A DNA stretch of 64,000 nt, taken from positions 186,001-250,000 of the IMG/VR virus record IMGVR_UViG_3300001782_000005; one strand, 5' to 3'. Shown one piece after another: positions 576 through 43,907 of this stretch. The notes under the pieces were generated by a model. The model did no database searches and had not been told where the DNA came from. It saw only the letters and a list, made by a program, of their open reading frames with translations. The position numbers and the translations under genes are program-made. Numbering within the stretch: the stretch's first letter is position 1; each line of letters starts with the position of its first letter.

Positions 576-590
576 AATTAATATATATAG
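576..590 (-). promoter_or_regulatory. Class-1 promoter-like motif (CTATATATATTAATT on - strand)
   Basis: AATTAATATATATAG on + strand; recurs ~35-60 nt upstream of many - strand genes. Confidence 0.6.
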
Positions 591-2409: not shown

Positions 2410-2424
2410 AATTAATATATATAG
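2410..2424 (-). promoter_or_regulatory. Class-1 promoter-like motif
   Basis: Exact AATTAATATATATAG, 47 nt upstream of pilin start. Confidence 0.6.
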
Positions 2425-5916: not shown

Positions 5917-5931
5917 AATTAATATATATAG
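5917..5931 (-). promoter_or_regulatory. Class-1 promoter-like motif
   Basis: Exact AATTAATATATATAG, 40 nt upstream of 5877 start. Confidence 0.6.
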
Positions 5932-13578: not shown

Positions 13579-13618
13579 GATTATCCTCCTTTAAAAGACA
13601 TAGCCAATTTCTCTTTAA

Positions 13619-13633
13619 AATTAATATATATAG
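13619..13633 (-). promoter_or_regulatory. Class-1 promoter-like motif
   Basis: Exact AATTAATATATATAG. Confidence 0.6.
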
Positions 13634-13697: not shown

Positions 13698-14369
13698 ATG
13701 AAACGGAGAATCAAAGCAATCGAATGTATTCAAACATGGCAGGGCGAAGGACCAGATACTGGTAAATCAATGCTTCTTATCAGATTTAAACATTGCGATC
13801 GAGTTGATCATAAGAACCCTTGTAATTGGTGCGATACATTAGTTAAGATGAGAGTTAGTCCAGAAGCAGAATATTCCTTACAAGAATTACAAAATATAAT
13901 AGATGATCAGAAATGTGGTTTGATGATAACTGGTGGAGAACCCACATGGGATCCACATTATAAAGATACGATTCTATTATTGAGGATGTTAAAGTATAAA
14001 TCTGCAAACGTTGAAACAAATGGTTATCGCTTAAGAGACCTCTATAAACAAAGTACACAAGATAATATCAACTATATTTACTCTCCTAAGATGTTTTATC
14101 CACATGAAGTAGATGATGCAGTTGAGATGACTAAATGGGCTAAAACTCGTAAAAATGTTTATATAAAAGTTGTATATAACAGGACTCGTGAGGATTATAA
14201 TTTTATTGAAAAGATTTCTGATATGGATATCAATGATAGGATCTATTTGATGCCACAAGGATGCAATAGAGAAGAACTATTAAAGAATACACCATTTGTA
14301 TTGGATATGGCTGAAAAGTTTAAAGTAAACATTTCAACGAGAATGCATTTAATGTTCGAATTTATCTAA
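13698..14369 (+). CDS. queE: 7-carboxy-7-deazaguanine synthase QueE-like radical SAM enzyme
   Basis: QGEG, IRFxxC-x8-CxxCDT, ITGGEP, VETNG, YSPK, LMPQG. Confidence 0.85.
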   Translation: MKRRIKAIECIQTWQGEGPDTGKSMLLIRFKHCDRVDHKNPCNWCDTLVKMRVSPEAEYSLQELQNIIDDQKCGLMITGGEPTWDPHYKDTILLLRMLKYKSANVETNGYRLRDLYKQSTQDNINYIYSPKMFYPHEVDDAVEMTKWAKTRKNVYIKVVYNRTREDYNFIEKISDMDINDRIYLMPQGCNREELLKNTPFVLDMAEKFKVNISTRMHLMFEFI

Positions 14370-29500: not shown

Positions 29501-30955
29501 ATGAAAGAACTCTTAATGGAATGCTACAGGACTACGAAGAAGATTTCCGGTATTGATCCATCAAAACCTGGAAATCTGAAGGCCGTACTTGTAGATGATT
29601 CCGCGTTTGAGGCTTATGTTACAAGTCTTGCTGAGTCCATTGAGGATAAGAAAGACCGCAAGAACTTCCTACAATTGGCTGAGAACACCAGGATCAACCT
29701 CCTGGAAAATTCAATGTTTCAGATCAACCCATATGAAACTTTGACTCTGCCAATTCTGCGCGTGTTTTATCCGAAGCTGATCGCTAAGGAACTTATCACT
29801 GTTTCGCCGATGGACAAACCGGAAACAATCAAGGCCTTCTTGACCGCCACCTTTTACAGACATGGTGACGCAACTGGGTACCCAGCACCCGCGCAGGCCA
29901 CTGATATTTCGCAGGGTCCAGCTGTTGGTACTCCTGTGGCAGCCACGATGCCTGTTCCAAGTAAGGCATACGATGTCCTGGCATTGATCGGTCTAACCAG
30001 CACAGAAGTTCACATTGAACGTGACTTCGAAATCACCGCTGTTAGCGCGGATGGTACTGCTTGGACCGAAGTTTCAATCATCCCTGCCGTTGAGGGTCAC
30101 TTCTCTGGCGGAGTAACAGTCACTGGTGTTGGTGATGACGTAATCTCCGGTAAAGTTGACTATCTCAATGGTACTGTTGACATTTCCAGTGCTACTGGAG
30201 TTGTCACCGTTATCAGGTTTACCTGCACTACTTCACTTGAAGAGAATAGGGTAAATCCATACGTCAAGCTGAATGTTGACAAGGTACGCCTCTATGCTAG
30301 GGATCGCCAGATCTCTGCAAACTGGACGATTAATATGGAGCAGGACATGAGAGCTCTGTTTGATCTGTCCATGCAGGCTGAAATCGTCAATATCCTTGGT
30401 CAACAGATCGCCCTTGACATTGATAGGGAGATTATCAATGCCTTGATTACGGGCAACACAAGGCTGAACCCAGCAACTCACCAGGATACCTTCAACCGTA
30501 CTCCACCTGTAGGATATACTTGGGGTACTAAGTATTGGCATGAGAATATTATTCCAGTTCTGAATGTGCTGTCTGCCCAGATCTACACAGACACTAATAT
30601 TGAAGCAGGTAACACCATTGCGGCCAACCCGCTTGATGTTGCTATTCTGGAAGATATTCAGACTTTCAATTACACTGGAACCTCAACTGTTGACGGTGAC
30701 TTCGGCTATCGCTCTGCTACTGTTGCAGGTGGCAAGTGGCGAGTTCTAACCAGTGCCGTTGTTCCACAAGGTACCATGGTCATCGTTTACAAACCAGTGG
30801 AAGAACTGAAGGTTGTCTACTACTACTGTCCATACGTTCCTGCCGTGTTGCATCCATACCCACTTGGATATACTCCATCTCTGACCATCTTGAGTCGTTA
30901 TGCGACTTCGTTGGTCAGGCCACTGGGTATTGCTACACTGACAATTGGAGCGTAA
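29501..30955 (+). CDS. Major capsid protein (T4 gp23-like)
   Basis: YPKLIAKELITVSPM, RQISANWTINMEQD...EIVNIL.QQIALDIDREII, YYCPYVP, TILSRYA. Confidence 0.9.
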   Translation: MKELLMECYRTTKKISGIDPSKPGNLKAVLVDDSAFEAYVTSLAESIEDKKDRKNFLQLAENTRINLLENSMFQINPYETLTLPILRVFYPKLIAKELITVSPMDKPETIKAFLTATFYRHGDATGYPAPAQATDISQGPAVGTPVAATMPVPSKAYDVLALIGLTSTEVHIERDFEITAVSADGTAWTEVSIIPAVEGHFSGGVTVTGVGDDVISGKVDYLNGTVDISSATGVVTVIRFTCTTSLEENRVNPYVKLNVDKVRLYARDRQISANWTINMEQDMRALFDLSMQAEIVNILGQQIALDIDREIINALITGNTRLNPATHQDTFNRTPPVGYTWGTKYWHENIIPVLNVLSAQIYTDTNIEAGNTIAANPLDVAILEDIQTFNYTGTSTVDGDFGYRSATVAGGKWRVLTSAVVPQGTMVIVYKPVEELKVVYYYCPYVPAVLHPYPLGYTPSLTILSRYATSLVRPLGIATLTIGA

Positions 30956-32036: not shown

Positions 32037-32051
32037 AAGTTATATATATAG
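32037..32051 (-). promoter_or_regulatory. Class-1 promoter-like motif (variant)
   Basis: AAGTTATATATATAG. Confidence 0.5.
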
Positions 32052-32072: not shown

Positions 32073-32112
32073 AAAAAAAAGACCTCAAGTATATTAATAA
32101 CTTGGGGTCTTT
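32073..32112 (-). terminator. Terminator downstream of tasA
   Basis: AAGACCCCAAGT/ACTTGAGGTCTT stem followed by T8 on - strand. Confidence 0.7.
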
Positions 32113-32134: not shown

Positions 32135-33298
32135 TCACCTAGAATGTACGATACCCAATTTTTCTTCTTCATATGGAGCGGATATCGGTAGTCCTTCTAA
32201 CTCCCTCCACTTCCTCCAGAAGTCAAGAAGAAATATTTTGAGCATATAGCGAATACTCATATTCTTTATATGGTTATCGCTTATGATATTACTCAAGACA
32301 AACTTCTTTGCTTCTTTTAGAGTTGGTTGTTTTTTCTGTTTTGCCAACCATTTCTTACATAACTCATATTTCTCAGAGTTAATGGTCAGGGTTCCCTCAG
32401 AATCATGGGGGTCTTTTTTATAGAGGATTTGTTTTTGCCTTAGAGCTCTTATGAAGAACTCCCTTCTTCCCTGCATTCTAGTTCTGTAATCATAGAAAAT
32501 AGGTGAATAAATATTATCTTGCTTACGAAGGAAACTGGTTGCCAGGACATGGAGTTTTGTTTTTAGGTATGGGGAATATGTTATACTCTTCTTTGTTTTG
32601 GTTTTACCAGACTTATCTGTATATTCCCTATCGACTAAGTGGTGAGATTTCTTACTTCTACCTTCTCCTCTGACAACCTCTTCACCTTCGATCTCATCTA
32701 GAGTCCATACCACGTCAAGACCAGCATAACTCCAAAATGCGGTGACATGGTTTGCCCTATGAGGATCAAGTTCGCTCACAAGAACGCCGCCCATTGTAGG
32801 ACCAACTCCTTCAAGTCCTTTCAGGAATTCTGTCCAGATTGGAAACTCATCAAGAAATTTCTCAATTTGCTTATTGATCTTGTACTCCTGTTTGACAAGA
32901 GATATATAGGTGTCAACAAATATAAACATAATTTCACCAGAGATTATACCAGGGTGTGCATCCTTCATAATCTTAGGAATCTCTTTCATGTTTATCACAA
33001 CACCGTCAGTGATTCTCTTGTATTCTCTAGAGATAAGTCCCATTAACTCTTTTGGGAGACCATAAAGACCTTCTTTCTTTTCTCCCGGTTTTAGTCCAAA
33101 GCGACGATATAGATTACCAAGAATCCTATTTCCCATCCTGATCCTATCCCTCTGAATATCGTCATATCCTCTAATTAATCCTCTCAATTCAATCTTTGGA
33201 CTCCACAACTCAGGTACAGGTTGCACAGGTATGCTAAAACCTCTGCCCTTGAAAACATCTGCGATTGATTTTATAGGTTCTAAAACTTCCTTAGCCAT
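32135..33298 (-). CDS. tasA: TasA-like Nop/IS110-related RNA-binding protein without recognisable nuclease domain
   Basis: Coiled coil LRGLIRGYDDIQRDRIRMGNR, then IWTEFLKGLEGVGPTMGG, AFWSYAGL, YSPYLKTKL, RYMLKIFLLD; no N-terminal DEDD RuvC, no IS110 SG catalytic loop, no HNH motif seen; abuts dual-repeat array. Confidence 0.8.
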   Translation of the reverse strand: MAKEVLEPIKSIADVFKGRGFSIPVQPVPELWSPKIELRGLIRGYDDIQRDRIRMGNRILGNLYRRFGLKPGEKKEGLYGLPKELMGLISREYKRITDGVVINMKEIPKIMKDAHPGIISGEIMFIFVDTYISLVKQEYKINKQIEKFLDEFPIWTEFLKGLEGVGPTMGGVLVSELDPHRANHVTAFWSYAGLDVVWTLDEIEGEEVVRGEGRSKKSHHLVDREYTDKSGKTKTKKSITYSPYLKTKLHVLATSFLRKQDNIYSPIFYDYRTRMQGRREFFIRALRQKQILYKKDPHDSEGTLTINSEKYELCKKWLAKQKKQPTLKEAKKFVLSNIISDNHIKNMSIRYMLKIFLLDFWRKWRELEGLPISAPYEEEKLGIVHSR

Positions 33299-33310
33299 AA
33301 CACTTCTCCT

Positions 33311-34838
33311 TGGTTCACTATATATATATGGGATTCTTTAATTCGATGGTTCACTCTACGTGCCGGTACGTCTCGATTCTTTGGAATCGGAAACACGCTT
33401 CTCTTGGTACACTACAATTTATTGATTTTTCTTATTCCTTGGTACACTTTTTCTTCTAGATTTTTTAAGAGATATAGGTTCACTCATGTTCGTTGGATAC
33501 TGCGGACTTCTGGTTCACTCCGGATGTTTGAATTTTATCAAATGATGGTTCACTGCCAACAAATGGTTTTTCCTTGCCAATACGGTTCACTTTTGAGTTC
33601 TGATTTTTTTGTGCTTGAAGGTCCACTTTATAGAAATGGGTTGCTGTAATTACATGGTTTACTAACACCCACAGGATTTCTCCCAATTCTAGGTTCACTT
33701 TTTTCTTCGGAATATTCTCCCCCACCTGGTTCACTTATCGTCTTAGGTTGTTTATCCATTCCGGGTTCACTCGGCAATTGGGTTTTTACTACGTAACTTG
33801 GTCCACTCCAACGCGCTGGGTTTCTGCGAGAGGACGGTTCACTCTTTTTTCAGGTTAATCTCCCCCACTTGGTTCACTCAAATTTTTGGGTTTCTGACAT
33901 TTTATGGTCCACTCCGTGTCGCTGGATTCCTCTGCTCCCTGTTGGTTCACTATTCAAAAATTGGTTTTTTTCCTTAGATTGGTTCACTCCGGCGCACTGG
34001 GTTTCTGTTGCTGGGTGGTTCACTTGGTGAATGTGAATTATTACAGGGGAATGGTCCACTTTATCATATTAGATTTTTTTCGTCGTTGGTTCACTTTGAA
34101 AAATGGGTTTGCATGACTTTTTGGGTTCACTCAGTCATCATGAATAACTGCCTTCAACTGGTTCACTGCAGCTCCCAGGTTTTCTCCGGGCTTATTGGTT
34201 CACTGGACTATAATGGTTTAGCTGTAGACTTTGGTTCACTTTCATGTACGGGATTTTCTAGCCAACGTAGGTACACTCCTTGCATCGGTTACCTGATATG
34301 CTATGGTTCACTTAACAATGATGATTTTTTGTGTCTTTATCTGGTTCACTTTCCAACGATGGGTTACTTCGCCAAAACGGTCCACTCAAAAATCCTGGTC
34401 TTCTGGCCTCGCTTGGTTCACACTAATTTCGGATTGGTACACTCTAAGGTGCCCTGCACCGACTGGTTTTTTACACTTTCCTTGAATGGTTTTCTCGCCC
34501 AGACCGGTTCATTCCCGTTTTCTGGTTATTATCCTCACTTCTGATTCACTCGCCACGTCTGAGTTTTTTGATCACTACTGGTTCACTTTCGTCATTTGAT
34601 TTCTGCTCAATTTTGGTTCACTTAAGATTCTTAGATACTTCTTTATCTTGGTTCACTAGACTGATTGGATTAATTGTACCACAGGTTCACTCGGCGGGTA
34701 TGAATTTTTCTGGATGCATGGTTCACTCATTCTGTTTAGATACTGATAAAGTTAGGTTCACTGAGGTTAGGAGGGTTCCTATTTCTCTCCTTTGGTTCAC
34801 TCTCTCGCTCAGGTAATCTGTTTCACGATGGTTCACTT
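33311..34838 (-). repeat. TIGR-type dual-repeat guide RNA array, about 42 edge repeats and ~36-nt units
   Basis: - strand unit = AGTGAACCA + ~9 nt spacer A + AGAAACCCA-like loop repeat + ~9 nt spacer B; e.g. + strand 33980 TGGTTCACT-CCGGCGCAC-TGGGTTTCT-GTTGCTGGG-TGGTTCACT 34024. Confidence 0.88.
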
Positions 34839-34854
34839 TGCAGAATAAATTACT

Positions 34855-34887
34855 AAAAAAAAGTACTCATAACGAGTACCTTTTTTT
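34855..34887. terminator. Bidirectional hairpin between tRNA-like RNA and array
   Basis: A8-GTACTC-ATAAC-GAGTAC-C-T7. Confidence 0.7.
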
Positions 34888-34895
34888 CTAAAGGG

Positions 34896-35038
34896 TGGTA
34901 GGGGGTGGGAATCGAACCCAAAGACGGTATTGGCAGTTGAAAGGAGGAAAGACCGCCAACTTTGGAAAAGAGTCCTCCCGACCGTCTTGGATGGTGGTAG
35001 AACAACCATCCAGCATTCCGGTTGCCATTCCCCCTACC
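34896..35038 (-). ncRNA. tRNA-like RNA with 9-bp acceptor, 4-bp T-stem and very long branched variable arm
   Basis: GGTAGGGGG/CCCCCTACC-A, TGGG-TTCGATT-CCCA T-arm, GGATGG/CCATCC arm, AGACGGT/ACCGTCT variable stem. Confidence 0.7.
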
Positions 35039-36778: not shown

Positions 36779-36813
36779 GGGGTGATGCTAAAAGGGCGTC
36801 ACCCCAATTTTTT
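36779..36813. terminator. Terminator between convergent genes
   Basis: GGGGTGATGC/GCGTCACCCC stem plus T-rich tail. Confidence 0.65.
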
Positions 36814-37374
36814 CGTTATCACGTTGTTAGCTTTAGTATGTTTTAATTTCTTATGACTCTCAATGGCAGAGTCTATACATGCCTCTTTTGTTTCCTTATC
36901 TATAAGTTCAAGAACCTCTGTTTCCTTCAATATGAGTTCATCCGAATTAGAAGCTGTATTTACAGAATAAACCATTGAGAGGTTCTGAATCGTTATATAC
37001 CTTGCTACCTCAGGATCTTGTTCTACTTCCCTGCAATAAATGTATGCCCAGTAAGAGTCCGTTATATACTTTCTTACCTCTGGGCGATTTTCGATCTCTT
37101 TACAATAATAGTATGCATCCTCTGGTTCGGTTATATATTTTCGTATGGTTGGATAATCCACACAGAACCTACAATAGAAATAGGCATATTCGGAGGCAGT
37201 TATTCGACGCCTGATTCTAATATCATCTTTAACCCACCTACAGTATTCATATGCCCACTTTGGAGATGTAATTAAATTAGCGACTTCAAATAGGTTCTTT
37301 ACATCTCTGCAATATTCATATGCCCACTTAGAAATCTGTTCTTCTTCTAACCAAAGGTTCATAATGTCGTCCAT
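36799..37374 (-). CDS. 22-aa tandem repeat protein
   Basis: Five repeats of AYxYCRxVxDxPxIRKYIT. Confidence 0.7.
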   Translation of the reverse strand: MDDIMNLWLEEEQISKWAYEYCRDVKNLFEVANLITSPKWAYEYCRWVKDDIRIRRRITASEYAYFYCRFCVDYPTIRKYITEPEDAYYYCKEIENRPEVRKYITDSYWAYIYCREVEQDPEVARYITIQNLSMVYSVNTASNSDELILKETEVLELIDKETKEACIDSAIESHKKLKHTKANNVITKKLG

Positions 37375-37391
37375 AAAAAAAATTAAAGTTG

Positions 37392-37426
37392 CCCTACTGA
37401 CGAGCAGAGAAGACTCGTCAGTAGGG
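37392..37426 (-). terminator. Terminator of secreted-protein operon
   Basis: CCCTACTGACGAG/CTCGTCAGTAGGG 13-bp stem, T-tract shortly after on - strand. Confidence 0.65.
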
Positions 37427-37448
37427 GTTAATTGTCATATGAAGCTGG

Positions 37449-38231
37449 TTACTCCGCTAAAGGCTTCAGAGCAAACATTTGAATCCAGGGTTTACTCCTA
37501 TATCCAGCCTCACCGCCGGAGAATCCGAAACCACCGGAACCAACACCACCACTGTTCTGATTGTTTTTGGCAGTCTCAATCCATGCCTGAGTGTAGCTAA
37601 AACCAACGCCCCACCCGAAGGCCTTGATTACACGAGAATAACCTTCTGCAGTCAGAAACAACGTTTTGGCTCCCATGTCTAGAGCGGAAAGAGCAGCAGC
37701 CGCCAATACCTCCATTGAGGTTGAGTCTACATTCTTGCTTGATACATAAATAAGACCAACCTGCTGAACGGGGTATGAAGGTCGCTTAATTATAATCTCA
37801 ATGGTATCCTCAGCAGCTTTCTCGTCCTTCTTCTTTATAGGAACTAAGGATTTCGCATTGATCTTGATCCTACCGCCTGCCATGGCCTCCAGTTCAGCAC
37901 GAGTCCACACCTTCTTGAAGAGCAACATAACGCCTGCTTTCTGGAAGTTGTAGTCCTCTGTGGGCTGACCGAAGTACTGTGGATATCCGGGGTAATTAAC
38001 ATCGCCCGGTACCGGGAAGCTTCTGGGAATCTCCGAACCATACGTAGTGATGGTTGCACTAGGACTCCCACCTATCTGAAGTTGCGACTGCTCATTGTTG
38101 CTAAGGTTCTGGTTATCAACTTCATTAGCGTTGGAGTTGTCACCATTTGCAATAGCATCAGCGAAAACAGCAGGCGCACTCAGCACCAAGCAGGAAAGTA
38201 GTGCGACCAGAATGAATAGCTTACGCCTCAT
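37449..38231 (-). CDS. Secreted protein, Asn/Gln-rich N-terminus, Gly/aromatic C-terminal hairpin
   Basis: Start moved to MRRKLFILVALLSCLVLSAPAVFA (GGAGG RBS). Confidence 0.7.
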   Translation of the reverse strand: MRRKLFILVALLSCLVLSAPAVFADAIANGDNSNANEVDNQNLSNNEQSQLQIGGSPSATITTYGSEIPRSFPVPGDVNYPGYPQYFGQPTEDYNFQKAGVMLLFKKVWTRAELEAMAGGRIKINAKSLVPIKKKDEKAAEDTIEIIIKRPSYPVQQVGLIYVSSKNVDSTSMEVLAAAALSALDMGAKTLFLTAEGYSRVIKAFGWGVGFSYTQAWIETAKNNQNSGGVGSGGFGFSGGEAGYRSKPWIQMFALKPLAE

Positions 38232-38253
38232 AGGGTCTTTCCTCCTTTCCTGC

Positions 38254-39120
38254 TTAGAGACCGCCGAGTCCCTCATTATAGGTGATGGACCCGTCCAATA
38301 CCGGGACCGATCCTGCGCTGTTGATGGTGAGTTTGGTATATGACTGAGATGCCTGTTGCTGGACTCCAGAAGCTCCAACAAGGACACCTTCGCCATCAAA
38401 CACTGGCCGCTGTACCTGCTCTTGTATGAACACATTGTTCGCTTCAAGATCAAGATCAGCATCACCAACCATGCTTACTGCAGCGCCGACACATGACTCA
38501 TGACCACCACTCTGCTGCATGGCCAAGAGAACAACATTTTCCATCAACAGTTCGCCAGCTATTCCATAAGTTGGCATCCAGTCAATGTCAATGTCTATGT
38601 CAGTGTCAGAATCGAAGTCAGCCTCGACCTCGGTTTCTGATTCTGCTTCTGCTTCAGAATCGGACATAGCAAGGGCACCAGCGCCAGCAACGGCTCCTGA
38701 ACCGCTCAGGGCACCAGCACCAGCTATTTCAATAGCTTCGCCCTCTCCGCTAGTATTTGCATTAGCGGTTGCATCACTGTCTCCAGTAGCGTTTGCATTT
38801 GCATCCGCATCCGAATCAGAAGTTGCGGTAGAGTCTGCAGTGGCATCGCTGCTAGCACTGTAACTCTCGTCGATGTTGATGTCTACAATCAACTGATCAT
38901 TGAACACAGGATTCCAGCTGAGACTGAGACTCTCAATTGAGAGATCAATCATGGACTGTTCGGCACAACAGGTTTCATGGTTGTTCCAAACAATACCATC
39001 AACTCCACTGGGTTGACCAATTGTCAGAGATGCATCGAGATCCTTGGGCGGATCAGCGAGAGACGGTACCGCAAAGGAGACCAGTGCAACAGCCAACAGT
39101 ATAGCTAAGACTTTCTTCAT
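38254..39120 (-). CDS. Secreted acidic Ala/Ser/Asp low-complexity protein
   Basis: Signal peptide MKKVLAILLAVALVSFAVPSLA; alternating beta-type pattern. Confidence 0.75.
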   Translation of the reverse strand: MKKVLAILLAVALVSFAVPSLADPPKDLDASLTIGQPSGVDGIVWNNHETCCAEQSMIDLSIESLSLSWNPVFNDQLIVDINIDESYSASSDATADSTATSDSDADANANATGDSDATANANTSGEGEAIEIAGAGALSGSGAVAGAGALAMSDSEAEAESETEVEADFDSDTDIDIDIDWMPTYGIAGELLMENVVLLAMQQSGGHESCVGAAVSMVGDADLDLEANNVFIQEQVQRPVFDGEGVLVGASGVQQQASQSYTKLTINSAGSVPVLDGSITYNEGLGGL

Positions 39121-39150
39121 GTCTTTTGCCTCCTTAATGTTTATGTAGGG

Positions 39151-39603
39151 TTAGTTAGTTGACGTTGATACAACTGAACTGGTGGATGTTTGTGTACTAG
39201 TTCCCGTTTGAACTCCGATATATCCGTTAGCTGCAAGACCAACTTGATTCTGCACATTGGTCTGATAAGCGTTAGCACCACCGGATGTAAACACACGAGT
39301 CTTATCTGTACAGTTGAGATCAGTTGTTGATTGGATTACCTGAATGACTTCCTGATCGGAAATCTGACTCATTTCTGCATCAGCGGGCATGGCCCAATAC
39401 TTAGCATCATAATCCAAACCGACATCTTCAGCTGTTACCGTAAGACCCTGAGCACGATTTTCAAGACGTGTGCTCTGATCGTACTCTTGATATATGACCT
39501 GCTTAGCATCCGTATTGGCATTGGTGGCACCATCGTCCGCATAGACGGAACTAGTGAGTACGAAGACCAACACGAGAACTAGAAAGACTATTGTCTTCCT
39601 CAT
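39151..39603 (-). CDS. Secreted Thr/Gln/Asn-rich protein
   Basis: Signal peptide ending VYA. Confidence 0.75.
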   Translation of the reverse strand: MRKTIVFLVLVLVFVLTSSVYADDGATNANTDAKQVIYQEYDQSTRLENRAQGLTVTAEDVGLDYDAKYWAMPADAEMSQISDQEVIQVIQSTTDLNCTDKTRVFTSGGANAYQTNVQNQVGLAANGYIGVQTGTSTQTSTSSVVSTSTN

Positions 39604-39635
39604 GTGGTCACTCCTTTCTCAGTGATCGGAGGTTC

Positions 39636-40622
39636 TTATCGAGGGACGTTACATTCTAACACACCAGCTGCAGTGAAACTGCTAACTGACCCTGCTTGGT
39701 AACCGCCTTGAACCTGGCCAGCCACAACACCGTCTCCAGCCCAACTAAGGGTGGTACCACGGTGAGTTTCGAAAGAGCAGTTTTCAGCATAGGATCCGCT
39801 CATGGCCAAGGTTTCTGACTTAGTCTTGGTCTCATCCTTGGTCTCGGTCACACTCTTGTCCCAGCTCTCTGACTTATCTTTGGTCTCAGTTACACTTTTA
39901 TCCCAAGATTCAGATGAGCTACCGGAACCTGAGAGATCGCCGGAGAAGGTGTGAGTATCTGTCTCGGTGACTGACTCTGACTTATTATAGTCACAGTCAG
40001 GGCAGTCAGAGTCTTCCTGAGTGTCGTTGTCAGTGAATGTCCCAGTTGAGGTTTCTGTCACAGTTTCCTCATCCGTACACTCTGCATTCGCAGCGATTTC
40101 AAATGAACCCTCACTGGAGGAGTCCTCATCGACTACTTTGGTCTCAGTCTTTGACTCGACGTAATCTTCATCGACAACCTTGGTCTTTTCCTTGGACTCG
40201 GTCTTCGTTTCATCATACTGCTTGTCGAACGACCAAGTACCATCTTTGGAACTTTCCATGGTGAAGTATTTGTCAATGTTGATTGAACCCTCACCCAAAG
40301 TGGCAAGTTGACCTTGACCATCAAACTGCATGGCCTCACCCTGAGCGCTCTGCATGGTGAAACCACCCACAACAGCATCTTCACAGTCTTCACAGTCGAT
40401 GGTTGCGGAGGTATCAGCCTCAAGCAGCATCTCTTTCTTGGATGATTGGAGCATTTCTCCACCGATAGTATCTCCACCCTCATTCTGAATGGCCTGGGCA
40501 CCCTGGAATTGCTCATCAGTCATGCCCTGGTAGAGTTCGGCCGAACCACTGATATCTGCCAGCGCCGGGCCGGCAAAAATCAGCAGAACGATGGAAAGTA
40601 ATACAATAACTTTCGTCTTCAT
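39636..40622 (-). CDS. Secreted Thr/Glu/Ser-rich protein with internal duplications
   Basis: Signal peptide ending ALA; ESWDKSVTETKD x2, TKVVDED x2, CxxC pairs. Confidence 0.75.
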   Translation of the reverse strand: MKTKVIVLLSIVLLIFAGPALADISGSAELYQGMTDEQFQGAQAIQNEGGDTIGGEMLQSSKKEMLLEADTSATIDCEDCEDAVVGGFTMQSAQGEAMQFDGQGQLATLGEGSINIDKYFTMESSKDGTWSFDKQYDETKTESKEKTKVVDEDYVESKTETKVVDEDSSSEGSFEIAANAECTDEETVTETSTGTFTDNDTQEDSDCPDCDYNKSESVTETDTHTFSGDLSGSGSSSESWDKSVTETKDKSESWDKSVTETKDETKTKSETLAMSGSYAENCSFETHRGTTLSWAGDGVVAGQVQGGYQAGSVSSFTAAGVLECNVPR

Positions 40623-40735
40623 GTCTTTGTTCCTCCTTTCAAAGGGGAATTTAATTAGTTTGAAAAGTAAATACCTCTACCTCTAAAACCTACTTATGAC
40701 CACCCCCTTCCATGTTTAGATTTGATCGCTGTTGA

Positions 40736-41278
40736 TCATTGAGAGAAGGATTGTTCCTTCTTGGGTTGTCTTACTTTATAATATGCATCACCAATAGCAA
40801 CTAAAGGAAGCCCTTGGTTATCATAAAGGATGGCTCTCAATTTTACAGTAGAACCAGGATCAACAGGACCATAGATGGTGACATAATTATTAAGTTTGCT
40901 AGTGGGTCCACTAACATACTCAACCTTCCTGGTGCGCCCCTTAAAGGGTTTAGACACGTCTAGCCACGATTGAACTTTATACTCAATGTTTTTCGGATTT
41001 TTGATCCAGGCATTGAGTGTTACGCCCTTGACATTCTCAGGAAGATACATTTTTTCGTTGACCTTGAAATAGATTGGATATGGTTCTAACTCCTCTCCTC
41101 CAAGATCTTTCATTATCCACCCTGCAGCATAATACTGAACCCTTATATCTACCTCTGGATCCGGGACCCTTAGATATTCTTGCTCATTACTCATAGGGTA
41201 TCCGTCGACCAAAACAGTCATATTTGGCGCACAGGAGACAGCAACAAAAATAAGTAACACATACATCTTACGCCACAT
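40736..41278 (-). CDS. Lipoprotein
   Basis: Short signal peptide with lipobox-like VAVSC. Confidence 0.65.
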   Translation of the reverse strand: MWRKMYVLLIFVAVSCAPNMTVLVDGYPMSNEQEYLRVPDPEVDIRVQYYAAGWIMKDLGGEELEPYPIYFKVNEKMYLPENVKGVTLNAWIKNPKNIEYKVQSWLDVSKPFKGRTRKVEYVSGPTSKLNNYVTIYGPVDPGSTVKLRAILYDNQGLPLVAIGDAYYKVRQPKKEQSFSQ

Positions 41279-41302
41279 AGGCGTCCTCCTTCCATTTTTT
41301 TG

Positions 41303-41932
41303 CTATCTCGGTTGTACTTCGTTTCTTGGACTACCCGTTGATGGTGAGGATGCATAAGAACCGTTGCTGCCCTGGTTTGGTTGAGATGAACTATTTACAG
41401 ATTGACCATTAGATGGTCCACTACCCGGGTAACCTTTTGGGCAACCTGGACATACTACTTGTACTTGTGGGCAACAGGTAGTATGGCGTTCAAGCCAAAT
41501 TTTGGTTATTCCTCCAACCTCTTGATGATCGGTTTTGGGATATTGAAGAGAAAACAGTTCATCCCTTGATTCTTCAACCTCGTCGTCATCTTCGGATTTT
41601 GGTTGATCTATGCATCTCGCTCGCATTGCTTGATCATATTGAGAGAGTGCAACCCCAGCCTTTTCTTTCTTGTCAATCGCTGCGAAGACTTGATCGCAGG
41701 TTGGAGTATTGTCAACGACAATCTTAGTGTCGATATCCGGGTCTTTGGTGTCATATTTGCCTGGTGGCAAACTTATGTTCTCGCCCGGATTGTCCATGGT
41801 AGGACTGTCTGCTTTCAATGGCAACTCAATCAACTCTATACCTGGGTCATGTACATTGTCTTCGGCTAAGGTAAAAGTTGATATTAATGCAATTGAAAGA
41901 ATGATAAAAAATACTAGTAAGATTCTCCTCAT
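41303..41932 (-). CDS. Secreted/membrane-anchored Cys-containing protein
   Basis: Signal peptide ending TLA; Ser/Pro/Gly tail. Confidence 0.65.
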   Translation of the reverse strand: MRRILLVFFIILSIALISTFTLAEDNVHDPGIELIELPLKADSPTMDNPGENISLPPGKYDTKDPDIDTKIVVDNTPTCDQVFAAIDKKEKAGVALSQYDQAMRARCIDQPKSEDDDEVEESRDELFSLQYPKTDHQEVGGITKIWLERHTTCCPQVQVVCPGCPKGYPGSGPSNGQSVNSSSQPNQGSNGSYASSPSTGSPRNEVQPR

Positions 41933-41966
41933 ACACTACCTCCTTTCATTTGTGGAAAAACTATAT

Positions 41967-42045
41967 AAAAAATTGGGTGGGGTAACTCCAATGGCGCGGT
42001 GCCGGAATTAATGGTTATGAATCGGGGAGCCCCCACCAATTTTTT
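41967..42045. other. Long imperfect inverted repeat (terminator/attenuator) upstream of secreted operon
   Basis: AAAAAATTGG.GTGGGG...CCCCACCAATTTTTT arms. Confidence 0.5.
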
Positions 42046-42047
42046 CG

Positions 42048-42239
42048 CTACTTACAAGCGTCTTTTACAGCCTGGTTGATGATGTCTGTTGGTGTCATAA
42101 AAGACATCGTTGTGATAGGTTTCTCGATACCTGGGCTGTAGAACTCAATACATTCCCTTTCAAAATTTACTTTGATTAAATCATTTGATTTAATCATCTC
42201 AATGATCTCAGGATCAAGATCTTGAATGTATGGTGACAT
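42048..42239 (-). CDS. Hypothetical protein
   Basis: GAGG RBS; class-1 motif at 42300-42313. Confidence 0.5.
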   Translation of the reverse strand: MSPYIQDLDPEIIEMIKSNDLIKVNFERECIEFYSPGIEKPITTMSFMTPTDIINQAVKDACK

Positions 42240-42343
42240 CGTATAACCTCTCTTTTTACGGTTTTTAAAGAAAACATCAACCCTGGTCTAATTATTAGTA
42301 ATTAATATATATAAGGATTAATTTAATAATAAAAAGAGAAGGT

Positions 42344-42378
42344 AGGCGAAGAGAGTAAAAACTAGTCCCTCTTCGCCT
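42344..42378 (-). terminator. Hairpin/terminator downstream of candidate ncRNA
   Basis: AGGCGAAGAG/CTCTTCGCCT 10-bp stem. Confidence 0.55.
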
Positions 42379-42393
42379 TTAGTTTGTGTGGAA

Positions 42394-42503
42394 CTCTGGA
42401 GGCCACGACTCCCCCGCCGAATGCCCATTATGGCGGGCGCACCACTTCCCAGCGGCAGGTTCCTCCCACCGATTATGTGCATCCTACTGCACCACCTCCA
42501 GAG
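42394..42503 (-). ncRNA. GC-rich multibranch structured RNA of unknown class
   Basis: CTCTGGAGG/CCTCCAGAG closing stem, internal GTGCA/TGCAC, CGGTGGG/CCTGCCG, CCCGCC/GGCGGG hairpins; class-1 motif at 42539-42553 upstream. Confidence 0.55.
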
Positions 42504-42659
42504 ACACTAAAAAAACGAAACAAACCCACTACTCTAGAAATTAATATATATAGAACATATACTAAATACAAAAAATTAGATTATGCTGACAATAGATATT
42601 AATTAGAACAAATTTTAAAACCACAATAGACTTTATCCTAAGAGGGGAGATTAGGTAAG

Positions 42660-43907
42660 ATGGGTAATCCGACTCCAAGTCAAGAGAGAATAGTTGACCC
42701 TTATGCATCTTATCATAGCAATGTTGTAAACAGACTAACCCGGATGATAACTACCGGACTCAATTGTTTATTTGGTACACATTCAATTGAAGTCACACAA
42801 TTATCAACCACGGAAGTCGAATGCTCAGAGGGTCAATGTTTTAAGGATGACGTACTGATTCAAACGACTGCTACCCTAACAGTTGATTTTGAAGATGAGG
42901 ATTTTTATGTTGATCCATCTGGAGGGTGGTGGAACGAAATAGGATATTACTATGTTGTCCTTGATTATGTTTATACAAAATCTAGACCCGCCCCAGAAGC
43001 TACCATCAAAATTATCCTACCAAGTCAAACTGCAACATTATTTAATTCTGATAGATATTTATTTCTAAAAGCAGTTGAAGTATCATGGAGCGGATCCGCA
43101 TTTGAAATTGATGATGTGTGGGATTTTGACCCAGCAACTCCAACAAATAGACGAGTCTATGCTCCTCTCTTTGCAGGTGTTCAAGATACAGTTCCGGCAT
43201 TTGATCAGGATGAACATGAGGCTAGAATTATCTACGTAAGGTCGACTGACAGATTATATTGGGGCACGTCTGCTCGTTGGGAAACATTTAATGCAATTAG
43301 AGATAATATTGATACAATTGGAATGACTGTTGGTCAATTAGGTTATGTTGATGCAGGTGGTGCTATGCAACCTGCTATTGCCGATTCTATTGACCATCAA
43401 GCAGACGCAGTTATTATTCAAGTTGGTTATGAGGCCGATGGCAGCGGTAAAGTTAGAATGGCCGGTCGTGCTGATGACGTACCAGTTGAAACTGGAGTTA
43501 CAGTTGCTATTGGTGATACTCTTTATTTATCTACAACCGAAGCAGGTACAGTCACAAATGTTGTACCGCCTGCTTTTCGCCAGACAGTTGGAACAGCAAT
43601 AAGTGCAGCAACAGGTCCAAGTACAATTAGTATATGGTTTTTCCCTGGTAATATGTATTTCGTTGCTGGTGCAAGTATTGTTAGAGATAACATTACTGCA
43701 CCAGGTGATTGGACCCTAAGCGCTGGGAATTATTATTATGATGTTGATATTTCTTCCCTTGGAGGTCTACAGGTAACTAGTGCATTTTTTGATGGGGTTG
43801 ACAAAATCTATCCCATGCATGAAGAACTCATCACTGTCCCGCCTTATAAACTCAGAGTATGGATGCCAGTGAATACCGTATCTCTCGACGCTATCATAAT
43901 AGGTTAA
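42660..43907 (+). CDS. Virion structural protein (tail/baseplate region)
   Basis: First gene of structural operon (class-2 motif 42606-42619); DUF2190-like GDTLYLS..AG.VT..P..F.Q.VG segment. Confidence 0.6.
   Translation: MGNPTPSQERIVDPYASYHSNVVNRLTRMITTGLNCLFGTHSIEVTQLSTTEVECSEGQCFKDDVLIQTTATLTVDFEDEDFYVDPSGGWWNEIGYYYVVLDYVYTKSRPAPEATIKIILPSQTATLFNSDRYLFLKAVEVSWSGSAFEIDDVWDFDPATPTNRRVYAPLFAGVQDTVPAFDQDEHEARIIYVRSTDRLYWGTSARWETFNAIRDNIDTIGMTVGQLGYVDAGGAMQPAIADSIDHQADAVIIQVGYEADGSGKVRMAGRADDVPVETGVTVAIGDTLYLSTTEAGTVTNVVPPAFRQTVGTAISAATGPSTISIWFFPGNMYFVAGASIVRDNITAPGDWTLSAGNYYYDVDISSLGGLQVTSAFFDGVDKIYPMHEELITVPPYKLRVWMPVNTVSLDAIIIG

Follow-up and report, generated by a model that had tools for sequence, protein, structure and literature searches.

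Does a phage encode a guide RNA that is directed at its own promoters? The question is raised by a 45-nt unit lying directly upstream of a tas gene in the window, by which we mean the whole 64,000-nucleotide stretch of DNA that was analysed (positions 186,001 to 250,000 of IMG/VR record IMGVR_UViG_3300001782_000005). A first-pass annotation had noticed that the two spacers of this unit, once joined, spell a motif recurring in the window, and had proposed that TasA with this guide acts as a switch for a whole promoter class. Our analysis favours, tentatively, the reading that the unit is a genuine tigRNA gene of a nuclease-free TIGR-TasA system of the phage and would guide TasA to block the promoter class of its own group; we place this reading slightly below the point at which we would call it probable. 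The source of the window is a large T4-like phage. A Gp23-type capsid gene is found at 29501-30955, and the sequence is also present in IMG/VR contigs of 142-277 kb. Searches for a DNA relative in the INPHARED phage set and for an Rfam match at gathering score gave none.

The product of the tas gene passed the NCBIfam TIGR-Tas model NF052498 (E=1.6e-33, 116.5 bits for a cut-off of 100) and matched the PDB structures of TasR (9mty, E=3e-13) and TasH (E=1e-5). No HNH or RuvC domain was detected in it by Pfam or NCBIfam, Transposase_20 being the only Pfam match. Just 37 residues lie N-terminal to the Nop-type core, and a search of the protein for a Cys/His-rich motif found none. The score on the NCBIfam IS110 model was 30.6 bits for a cut-off of 140, so that the protein does not qualify as an IS110 recombinase (DEDD/RuvC plus Tnp); its likeness to IS110 is limited to the shared C-terminal helix-hairpin region. 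Since it passes the TIGR-Tas model, has a short N-terminus and carries neither HNH nor RuvC, the protein is, by these comparisons, a TasA with insertions.

The array upstream of tas contains 42 edge repeats, spaced at 36 nt in 18 cases and at 35-37 nt in 34. Its per-position information profile showed 9 variable, 9 conserved and again 9 variable positions, corresponding to 9-nt spacers and a 9-nt loop. With the edge repeat read as AGUGAACCA and the loop as AGAAAxCCA, a box C (CCA) precedes each spacer and a box D (xG/UGA) follows it. By every feature testable from sequence, the locus belongs to the dual-repeat TIGR-TasA family. The coordinates of its parts, and those of the motif copies discussed below, are collected in Table 1.

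Table 1. Features of the TIGR-Tas locus and copies of the promoter-like motif, by position in the window
Feature	Position	Strand	Remarks
Motif copy, + strand AATTAATATATATAG	576-590	-	promoter-like, fires toward - strand
Motif copy	2410-2424	-	47 nt from start of - strand gene 1956-2363
Motif copy	5917-5931	-	exact match
Motif copy	13619-13633	-	best own-genome match of terminal guide
Variant motif copy, + strand AAGTTATATATATAG	32037-32051	-	between tas terminator and next - strand gene; conserved in all lineages examined
Hairpin and T-run after tas	32073-32110	-	judged an intrinsic terminator by eye; consensus scan of the region did not list the site
tas gene, 387 aa, TasA type	32135-33298	-	Nop-type core with insertions, no HNH or RuvC domain
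tas RBS AGGAG	33306-33310	-	abuts last edge repeat; layout common to relatives
Tas-proximal (terminal) TIGR unit, complete	33311-33355	-	edge, spacer A, loop, spacer B, edge
Edge repeats of terminal unit, AGTGAACCA	33355-33347 and 33319-33311	-	
Spacer A, TCGAATTAA	33346-33338	-	
Loop repeat of terminal unit, AGAATCCCA	33337-33329	-	
Spacer B, TATATATAT	33328-33320	-	
Non-repeat segment, 49 nt	33356-33404	-	separates terminal unit from main array; small hairpin 33389-33374
Dual-repeat TIGR array, ~40 units	33311-34845	-	edge repeat AGTGAACCA, loop repeat AGAAAxCCA
Strong terminator	34855-34887	-	terminator scan; just upstream of TIGR array
Motif copy	42300-42314	-	after hairpin; ~60 nt upstream of - strand ORF 42048-42239
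Motif copy	42539-42553	-	~57 nt upstream of - strand ORF 42318-42482, RBS GGAGG

For comparison we used 13 further loci (designated by L numbers) from at least five lineages, with Tas proteins 90, 84, 83, 75 and 46% identical to that of the window. Reading the - strand, we found the terminal unit to have the sequence given in the first-pass annotation, AGTGAACCA/TCGAATTAA/AGAATCCCA/TATATATAT/AGTGAACCA, after which come AGGAG and, at 33298, the ATG of tas; the last edge repeat ends 12 nt ahead of this ATG on the same strand. Fusion of the last full edge repeat to the tas RBS (33306-33319, - strand) was observed in every lineage. Because of this fusion, excision of the last tigRNA would generate the 5' terminus of the tas mRNA, so that Tas translation would be linked to maturation of the guide. 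The segment of about 49 nt that sets apart one to four tas-proximal units from the main array (3' end ACCGGCACGYAG) was also found in L004 (9790-9834), L129, L131 and L140, and is missing from L210 and L216. Its 6-bp hairpin is kept in relatives, with one compensatory change. Decay of the array in the window lineage was considered and rejected, repeat integrity being 71% as against 73% and 84% in relatives.

Several other elements were observed in and around the array. A second aberrant stretch within it (34422-34513, - strand) forms a hairpin GGTGC-AGG-GCACC and is kept in L004 and L130/L131. The arrays of L004 (9390-9665), L129, L140, L206-210 and L216 contain a 91-aa ORF with its own RBS (PHROG 16275, function unknown), for which a tblastn search of the window found no match. 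A tRNA-like element of about 145 nt (34894-35038, - strand), with an acceptor-like stem, a GGTTCGATTCC T-arm, TATAAT before it and the strong terminator after it, is a conserved feature ahead of the array in every lineage; ARAGORN returned nothing for this element and Rfam only a weak tRNA-Sec match (22 bits, E=0.22). Further upstream, the block of - strand genes at 36800-42000 has a GC content of 0.44-0.48, compared with about 0.35 elsewhere, and encodes proteins without family matches.

As the first-pass annotation had stated, a 17-mer, TCGAATTAATATATATA, results when spacer A and the reverse complement of spacer B are joined so that they have one base in common, and its last 14 nt are the motif AATTAATATATATA. 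This motif, the most prominent dispersed repeat in the window, occurs there exactly six times, always on the + strand, for 0.08 occurrences expected from shuffles. At all six sites the 17-mer has two or three mismatches, every one of them within its first three bases: A1-A3 of the spacer disagree everywhere, save for A1 at one site, so that these three distal bases match own-genome sites at 1 of 18 positions. The best own-genome site is the 13619 copy, where 15 of 17 bases match starting at 13616. We then drew random spacer pairs from the 9-mers of the window, allowing any of four offsets and both orientations. Three mismatches or fewer at five or more of the six sites were obtained in 1 of 20,000 trials, that is 5e-5 per unit, or about 2e-3 across 39 units. 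Spacer B is of low complexity; with it fixed as TATATATAT, a random spacer A succeeded in 0.9% of trials.

The other 38 units of the array gave no comparable match in the window, none being within one mismatch of any site, and spacer 9-mers were not enriched there (64 versus 65.7). Matches of units with two mismatches in about 170 kb of group DNA showed no global excess either (8 versus 5.4). Judged from the figures for the motif, the relationship between guide and promoter is real rather than due to chance. The 14-nt core matched by the guide is free of G and C. QueC-like, GTP-binding and QueE-like genes lie at 671-1270, 2441-2827 and 13698-14369, which suggests 7-deazaguanine modification of the phage DNA. 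Another unit, at 33627-33663 (- strand), TGTAATTAC / TTTCTATAA(G), is conserved in three lineages (window, L140 and L210); it is 12/18 identical to the terminal unit and 13/17 to motif copies 576 and 42300, which is chance level when taken alone.

All copies of the motif are intergenic and read CTATATATATTAATT on the - strand. They lie 40-60 nt upstream of - strand ORFs with an RBS, and two of them follow hairpins or terminators, in agreement with the earlier claim that the motif serves - strand genes as a predicted promoter. Relatives L004, L131, L132 and L208-210 carry a copy between the upstream terminator and the first TIGR repeat, where the window has a gap of only 17 nt; in L205, which lacks an array and whose Tas is 46% identical, a copy precedes the tas ATG by about 65 nt. 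Given its intergenic position, fixed orientation, placement before ORFs with an RBS and after terminators or hairpins, and its presence ahead of the array or of tas in relatives, the motif is most simply taken for a promoter that fires in the direction of its AATTAA side and whose -10 hexamer is probably TATATT. The 17 bp matched by the guide would then span this hexamer and the stretch just downstream. A variant of the motif in opposite orientation (+ strand CAATAGATATTAATT) is present at 42591-42607, about 55 nt before the + strand gene 42660-43907, and is kept in L050. Together with the 42539 copy it forms a putative divergent promoter pair, and the terminal guide matches it at 14/17 positions, with one internal mismatch.

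The order in which the spacers had been joined corresponds to the published target geometry: in Table S3 of Faure et al. (Science 2025), which lists TaTasR tigRNA1 and its target oligonucleotides, the target strand is spacer A followed by the reverse complement of spacer B. In that paper, the rule is abutting spacers with gaps of 1-2 bp tolerated, and its authors judged overlap unlikely because they saw no covariation of A and B in their arrays. In our arrays the orientation fits the published order, the terminal unit needs a 1-nt overlap and the L210 unit described below fits a gap of 0.

Overlap is backed by a signal that runs through the arrays. The arrays concerned are those of the window (33311-34845), L004, L129, L131, L132 and L140. 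Among 119 distinct units of this array family, the last bases of the two spacers (A9 and B9) were Watson-Crick complementary in 60, as they are in the terminal unit (A and T), whereas the other 80 pairs of A and B positions were complementary in 15-37%. Permutation gave a mean of 30.7 (sd 4.7) and never reached 60 in 100,000 runs. The signal persisted after homologous units were collapsed (47/90), was replicated in the L140 array, which was added later (12/25), and disappeared in a wrong-frame control (26/120); the arrays of the distant TasA loci L202, L204 and L205 were too short to widen the test. In the target, A9 and B9 come together at the centre, where a 1-nt overlap calls for just this complementarity. 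The overlap put forward in the first-pass annotation thus has some support from the arrays; it departs from the published rule of abutting spacers with a gap of 0-2 bp. The identical site would be predicted if the two bases paired as RNA in the middle of the complex and the target were of the form 8+1+8; as a test of such pairing, G-T combinations at A9:B9 were not enriched (7/90), and we consider it a less likely cause of the signal. The pair types were skewed (C-G 22, T-A 15, A-T 7, G-C 3). In units common to several lineages the pairing was often lost in one of them, so A9:B9 complementarity may be a birth mark of spacer-pair acquisition rather than a maintained constraint. It has implications for target geometry and perhaps for the way in which spacer pairs arise.

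The arrays are collinear across lineages and turn over fast, about 9 of 39 units being shared. Tas-proximal units are lineage-specific everywhere, and the terminal unit of the window is absent from L140 (Tas 90% identical), L004/L132 (83%), L129, L214 and L216-219 (84%), and L131/L206-209 (75%). Relatives without it keep the motif wherever there is sufficient sequence to check. Comparison of L210 (5700-5932) with L216 (2870-3000), whose Tas proteins are at least 90% identical, revealed two extra units in L210 directly before the tas RBS, which points to gain or loss of units at the tas end.

Two units in relatives resemble the terminal unit in their match to the motif. The penultimate unit of L210/L215 (Tas 84%) reads AATTTATTA / loop / TATATATAT. 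The 18-mer obtained by abutting its spacers finds its best match at the 2410 copy of the window (16/18), where a 13-nt core is shared; in our own alignment the same guide matches its own leader at 14/18, below the value for the window site. The window and L210 units are identical in the bases that match the motif, namely spacer B and the final five of spacer A; in the 5' bases of spacer A, which do not match it, they are wholly different. In L140, a mid-array unit, AAGTTATAT / CTCTATATA, produces an overlap 17-mer that matches 15/17 bases of the promoter just downstream of tas (the 32037-32051 variant). Over the whole group, 3 of 172 distinct units match TA-run sites of the motif class with two mismatches, the next best unit having four. 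In a null of 200 cross-paired runs the mean was 0.33, with counts of 0 in 141 runs, 1 in 52, 2 in 7 and never 3. At three mismatches or fewer the group-wide count was not enriched (3 versus a null mean of 1.9). Exact scans of IMG/VR with the 17-mer, its 16-mer core, the L210 18-mer and the L140 17-mer gave no perfect target in the phage group and hit unrelated AT-rich viruses only. We also considered whether the motif had been lost from the array leader of the window because a guide targeting it had been gained; this was rejected, L210 having both.

A match of AT-rich short spacers to an AT-rich motif could be a chance resemblance. A 17-mer allowed up to three mismatches should indeed turn up 0.8 times in the window, some match with two mismatches exists in about 170 kb for about 5 of 140 cross-paired units, and spacers are not generally enriched in the phage genome. 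The match nevertheless falls on the single dominant dispersed motif (p ~5e-5 per unit), and the two further units in relatives match the same class likewise, so that we regard chance as quite improbable. Still less credit, very little in fact, can be given to the alternative offered in the first-pass annotation, namely that the TA run is a cis element, an internal tasA promoter with a -10 TATAGT formed together with the edge repeat, the AATTAA in spacer A being a coincidence. The motif fires toward its AATTAA side, and the G-side orientation at the unit is the wrong one; a consensus scan gives no sigma-70-like site there, and the AATTAA match would still have p ~0.009. The tas genes of L004, L129, L131, L140 and L216 have no TA run before them, the TA unit of L210 is penultimate and comes with a leader promoter, and the motif-matching unit of L140 lies mid-array. 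These relatives weaken the alternative, although ATATATATAG occurs eight times in the window with its sole - strand copy in the terminal unit, 19 nt before the tas ATG, and the window lineage, unlike its relatives, has no motif-type promoter ahead of the array.

More weight is due to the idea that the match records where the guide came from, which we consider unlikely but well short of negligible. The pair would have been captured from, or selected against, a motif-type promoter of a competing relative with TCG beside the core, and the three distal mismatches would spare the phage's own sites; the guide would then serve inter-phage competition or be a relic. Fast turnover of the arrays and gain or loss of units at the tas-proximal end are in line with this idea, as are the 1/18 agreement of the three distal bases with own sites and the better fit of the L210 guide to the window site than to its own leader. 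The Science 2025 paper also favours a role of TIGR systems in competition between mobile elements. Against it, no IMG/VR contig of the group holds a perfect target, a non-cutting TasA that silences one foreign promoter would be a weak weapon, and the core matches own sites as well, so that discrimination would rest on three bases.

Under the reading that we prefer, repression of the phage group's own promoter class, the array and tas would be co-transcribed, and the last tigRNA would be cut out to leave a tas mRNA beginning just before its RBS. The two 9-nt spacers, with their central base shared, would recognise the all-A/T core of the promoter class, CTATATATATTAATT, including the likely -10 hexamer TATATT. 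A TasA dimer carrying the terminal tigRNA would open the promoter core, spacer B pairing with the template strand of the TA run and spacer A with the other strand over AATTAA, and RNA polymerase would be blocked. The small - strand genes driven by this promoter class would thereby be shut off, whether in the phage itself, in a co-infecting relative with the same motif, or in both. The anatomy, the match, the geometry signature and the motif's promoter-like position are seen in the sequence itself; expression, processing, binding despite two or three distal mismatches, and the direction of the effect are the steps that we infer. The purpose may be to shut off own genes, to exert feedback on the TIGR locus or to keep out co-infecting relatives.

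Published work bears on this mechanism from both sides. TasA has been described as an RNA-guided transcription repressor in E. coli, shown for MbTasA only (bioRxiv 10.64898/2026.09.09.750476). In the Science 2025 paper, a natural E. coli site that TaTasR engaged is matched by spacer B at 9/9 and by spacer A at 6/9 positions; this is the pattern of the terminal guide on the motif and was counted in favour of the mechanism. Spacer positions 3-4 are given as seed positions in TaTasR, and A3 is mismatched at own sites; double edge mismatches are also reported to have impaired TasR, and SpTasH to be very sensitive to mismatches. The promoter-class switch of the first-pass annotation therefore stands in part: the genuine unit, the geometry, the promoter-like motif and the guides of relatives speak for it, and the two or three mismatches at all own sites, the lack of a perfect target in the group's IMG/VR contigs, the low complexity of spacer B, the unenriched group-wide count at three mismatches or fewer and the absence of the unit from most relatives that keep the motif speak against it. 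We find functional repression of these promoters by the terminal guide plausible, with the balance tipping faintly to the negative side. A broader proposal is that TasA, together with tigRNAs dedicated to this role, gives the phage programmable global control over its own promoter class, in the form of a temporal shut-off or superinfection-exclusion switch with 17-bp targets, one central base pair being read by both spacers. We think this rather unlikely as a whole; the promoter class concerned also precedes the TIGR locus itself in relatives.

The natural targets of TIGR-Tas were described as unknown in a 2026 preprint and, with the biological roles of these systems, figure as open questions in the discussion of the Science 2025 paper; among the roles that the preprint suggests is control of the viral life cycle. 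What is already known is RNA-guided repression by TasA in a heterologous setting; what would be new here is a candidate natural target and the overlap signature. The locus offers a test case, with one TasA, one 36-nt RNA and a 15-bp promoter core in many copies. If the proposal is true, TIGR-Tas would have its first natural target class, and for the first time a phage would be seen to control an entire class of promoters through a guide RNA.

Regulators derived from CRISPR systems provide a parallel, as in Francisella scaRNA-Cas9, long-form tracrRNA autorepression of Cas9 operons and CreR/CreT-type guides: a guide linked to an array is directed by partial complementarity to a promoter of its own genome and binding occurs without cleavage. 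The phage locus differs from these in its effector family, in the use of two short spacers on opposite strands and in being matched to a promoter class instead of a single promoter. In the core of the IS110 bridge RNA, opposite strands of the DNA are read by guide segments around one central position common to both. Here there is neither recombinase nor donor loop, but a central base pair read by both spacers would, if the proposal is true, echo the IS110 core. The Science 2025 paper states the structural kinship of the RNA-binding domains of Tas and IS110. Its Table S3 gives the TaTasR repeats as UGCGAGCCA and UGAAACCCA, and the loop repeat listed there agrees with our loop consensus at 8/9 positions. 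At the E. coli wcaD site, TaTasR combined a full match of spacer B with 6/9 of spacer A (Science 2025, Fig. 3), as the terminal guide does on the motif; that site was, however, a fortuitous off-target of an over-expressed nuclease with abutting spacers, whereas the phage guide has no nuclease, a 1-nt overlap and at least six sites.

The system with most in common is the dual-repeat TIGR-TasA represented by FpTasA, MbTasA and PlTasA (Faure et al., Science 2025; bioRxiv 10.64898/2026.09.09.750476 and 10.64898/2026.08.11.744272). It shares with the phage locus a nuclease-free Nop-type Tas, alternating edge and loop repeats, 9-nt spacers, a 36-nt period, an array adjoining tas, and, in the predicted target, the order of spacer A followed by the reverse complement of spacer B. 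In this family TasA (MbTasA) was shown to bind DNA and to repress transcription under RNA guidance. The phage Tas is about 90 aa longer than a typical TasA (387 versus ~290 aa), its array is split by a conserved non-repeat hairpin segment and its last repeat is fused to the tas RBS. The locus differs further from these systems in its A9:B9 signature, which was not seen by the 2025 authors in their arrays, and in having a candidate natural target in the phage's own promoters.
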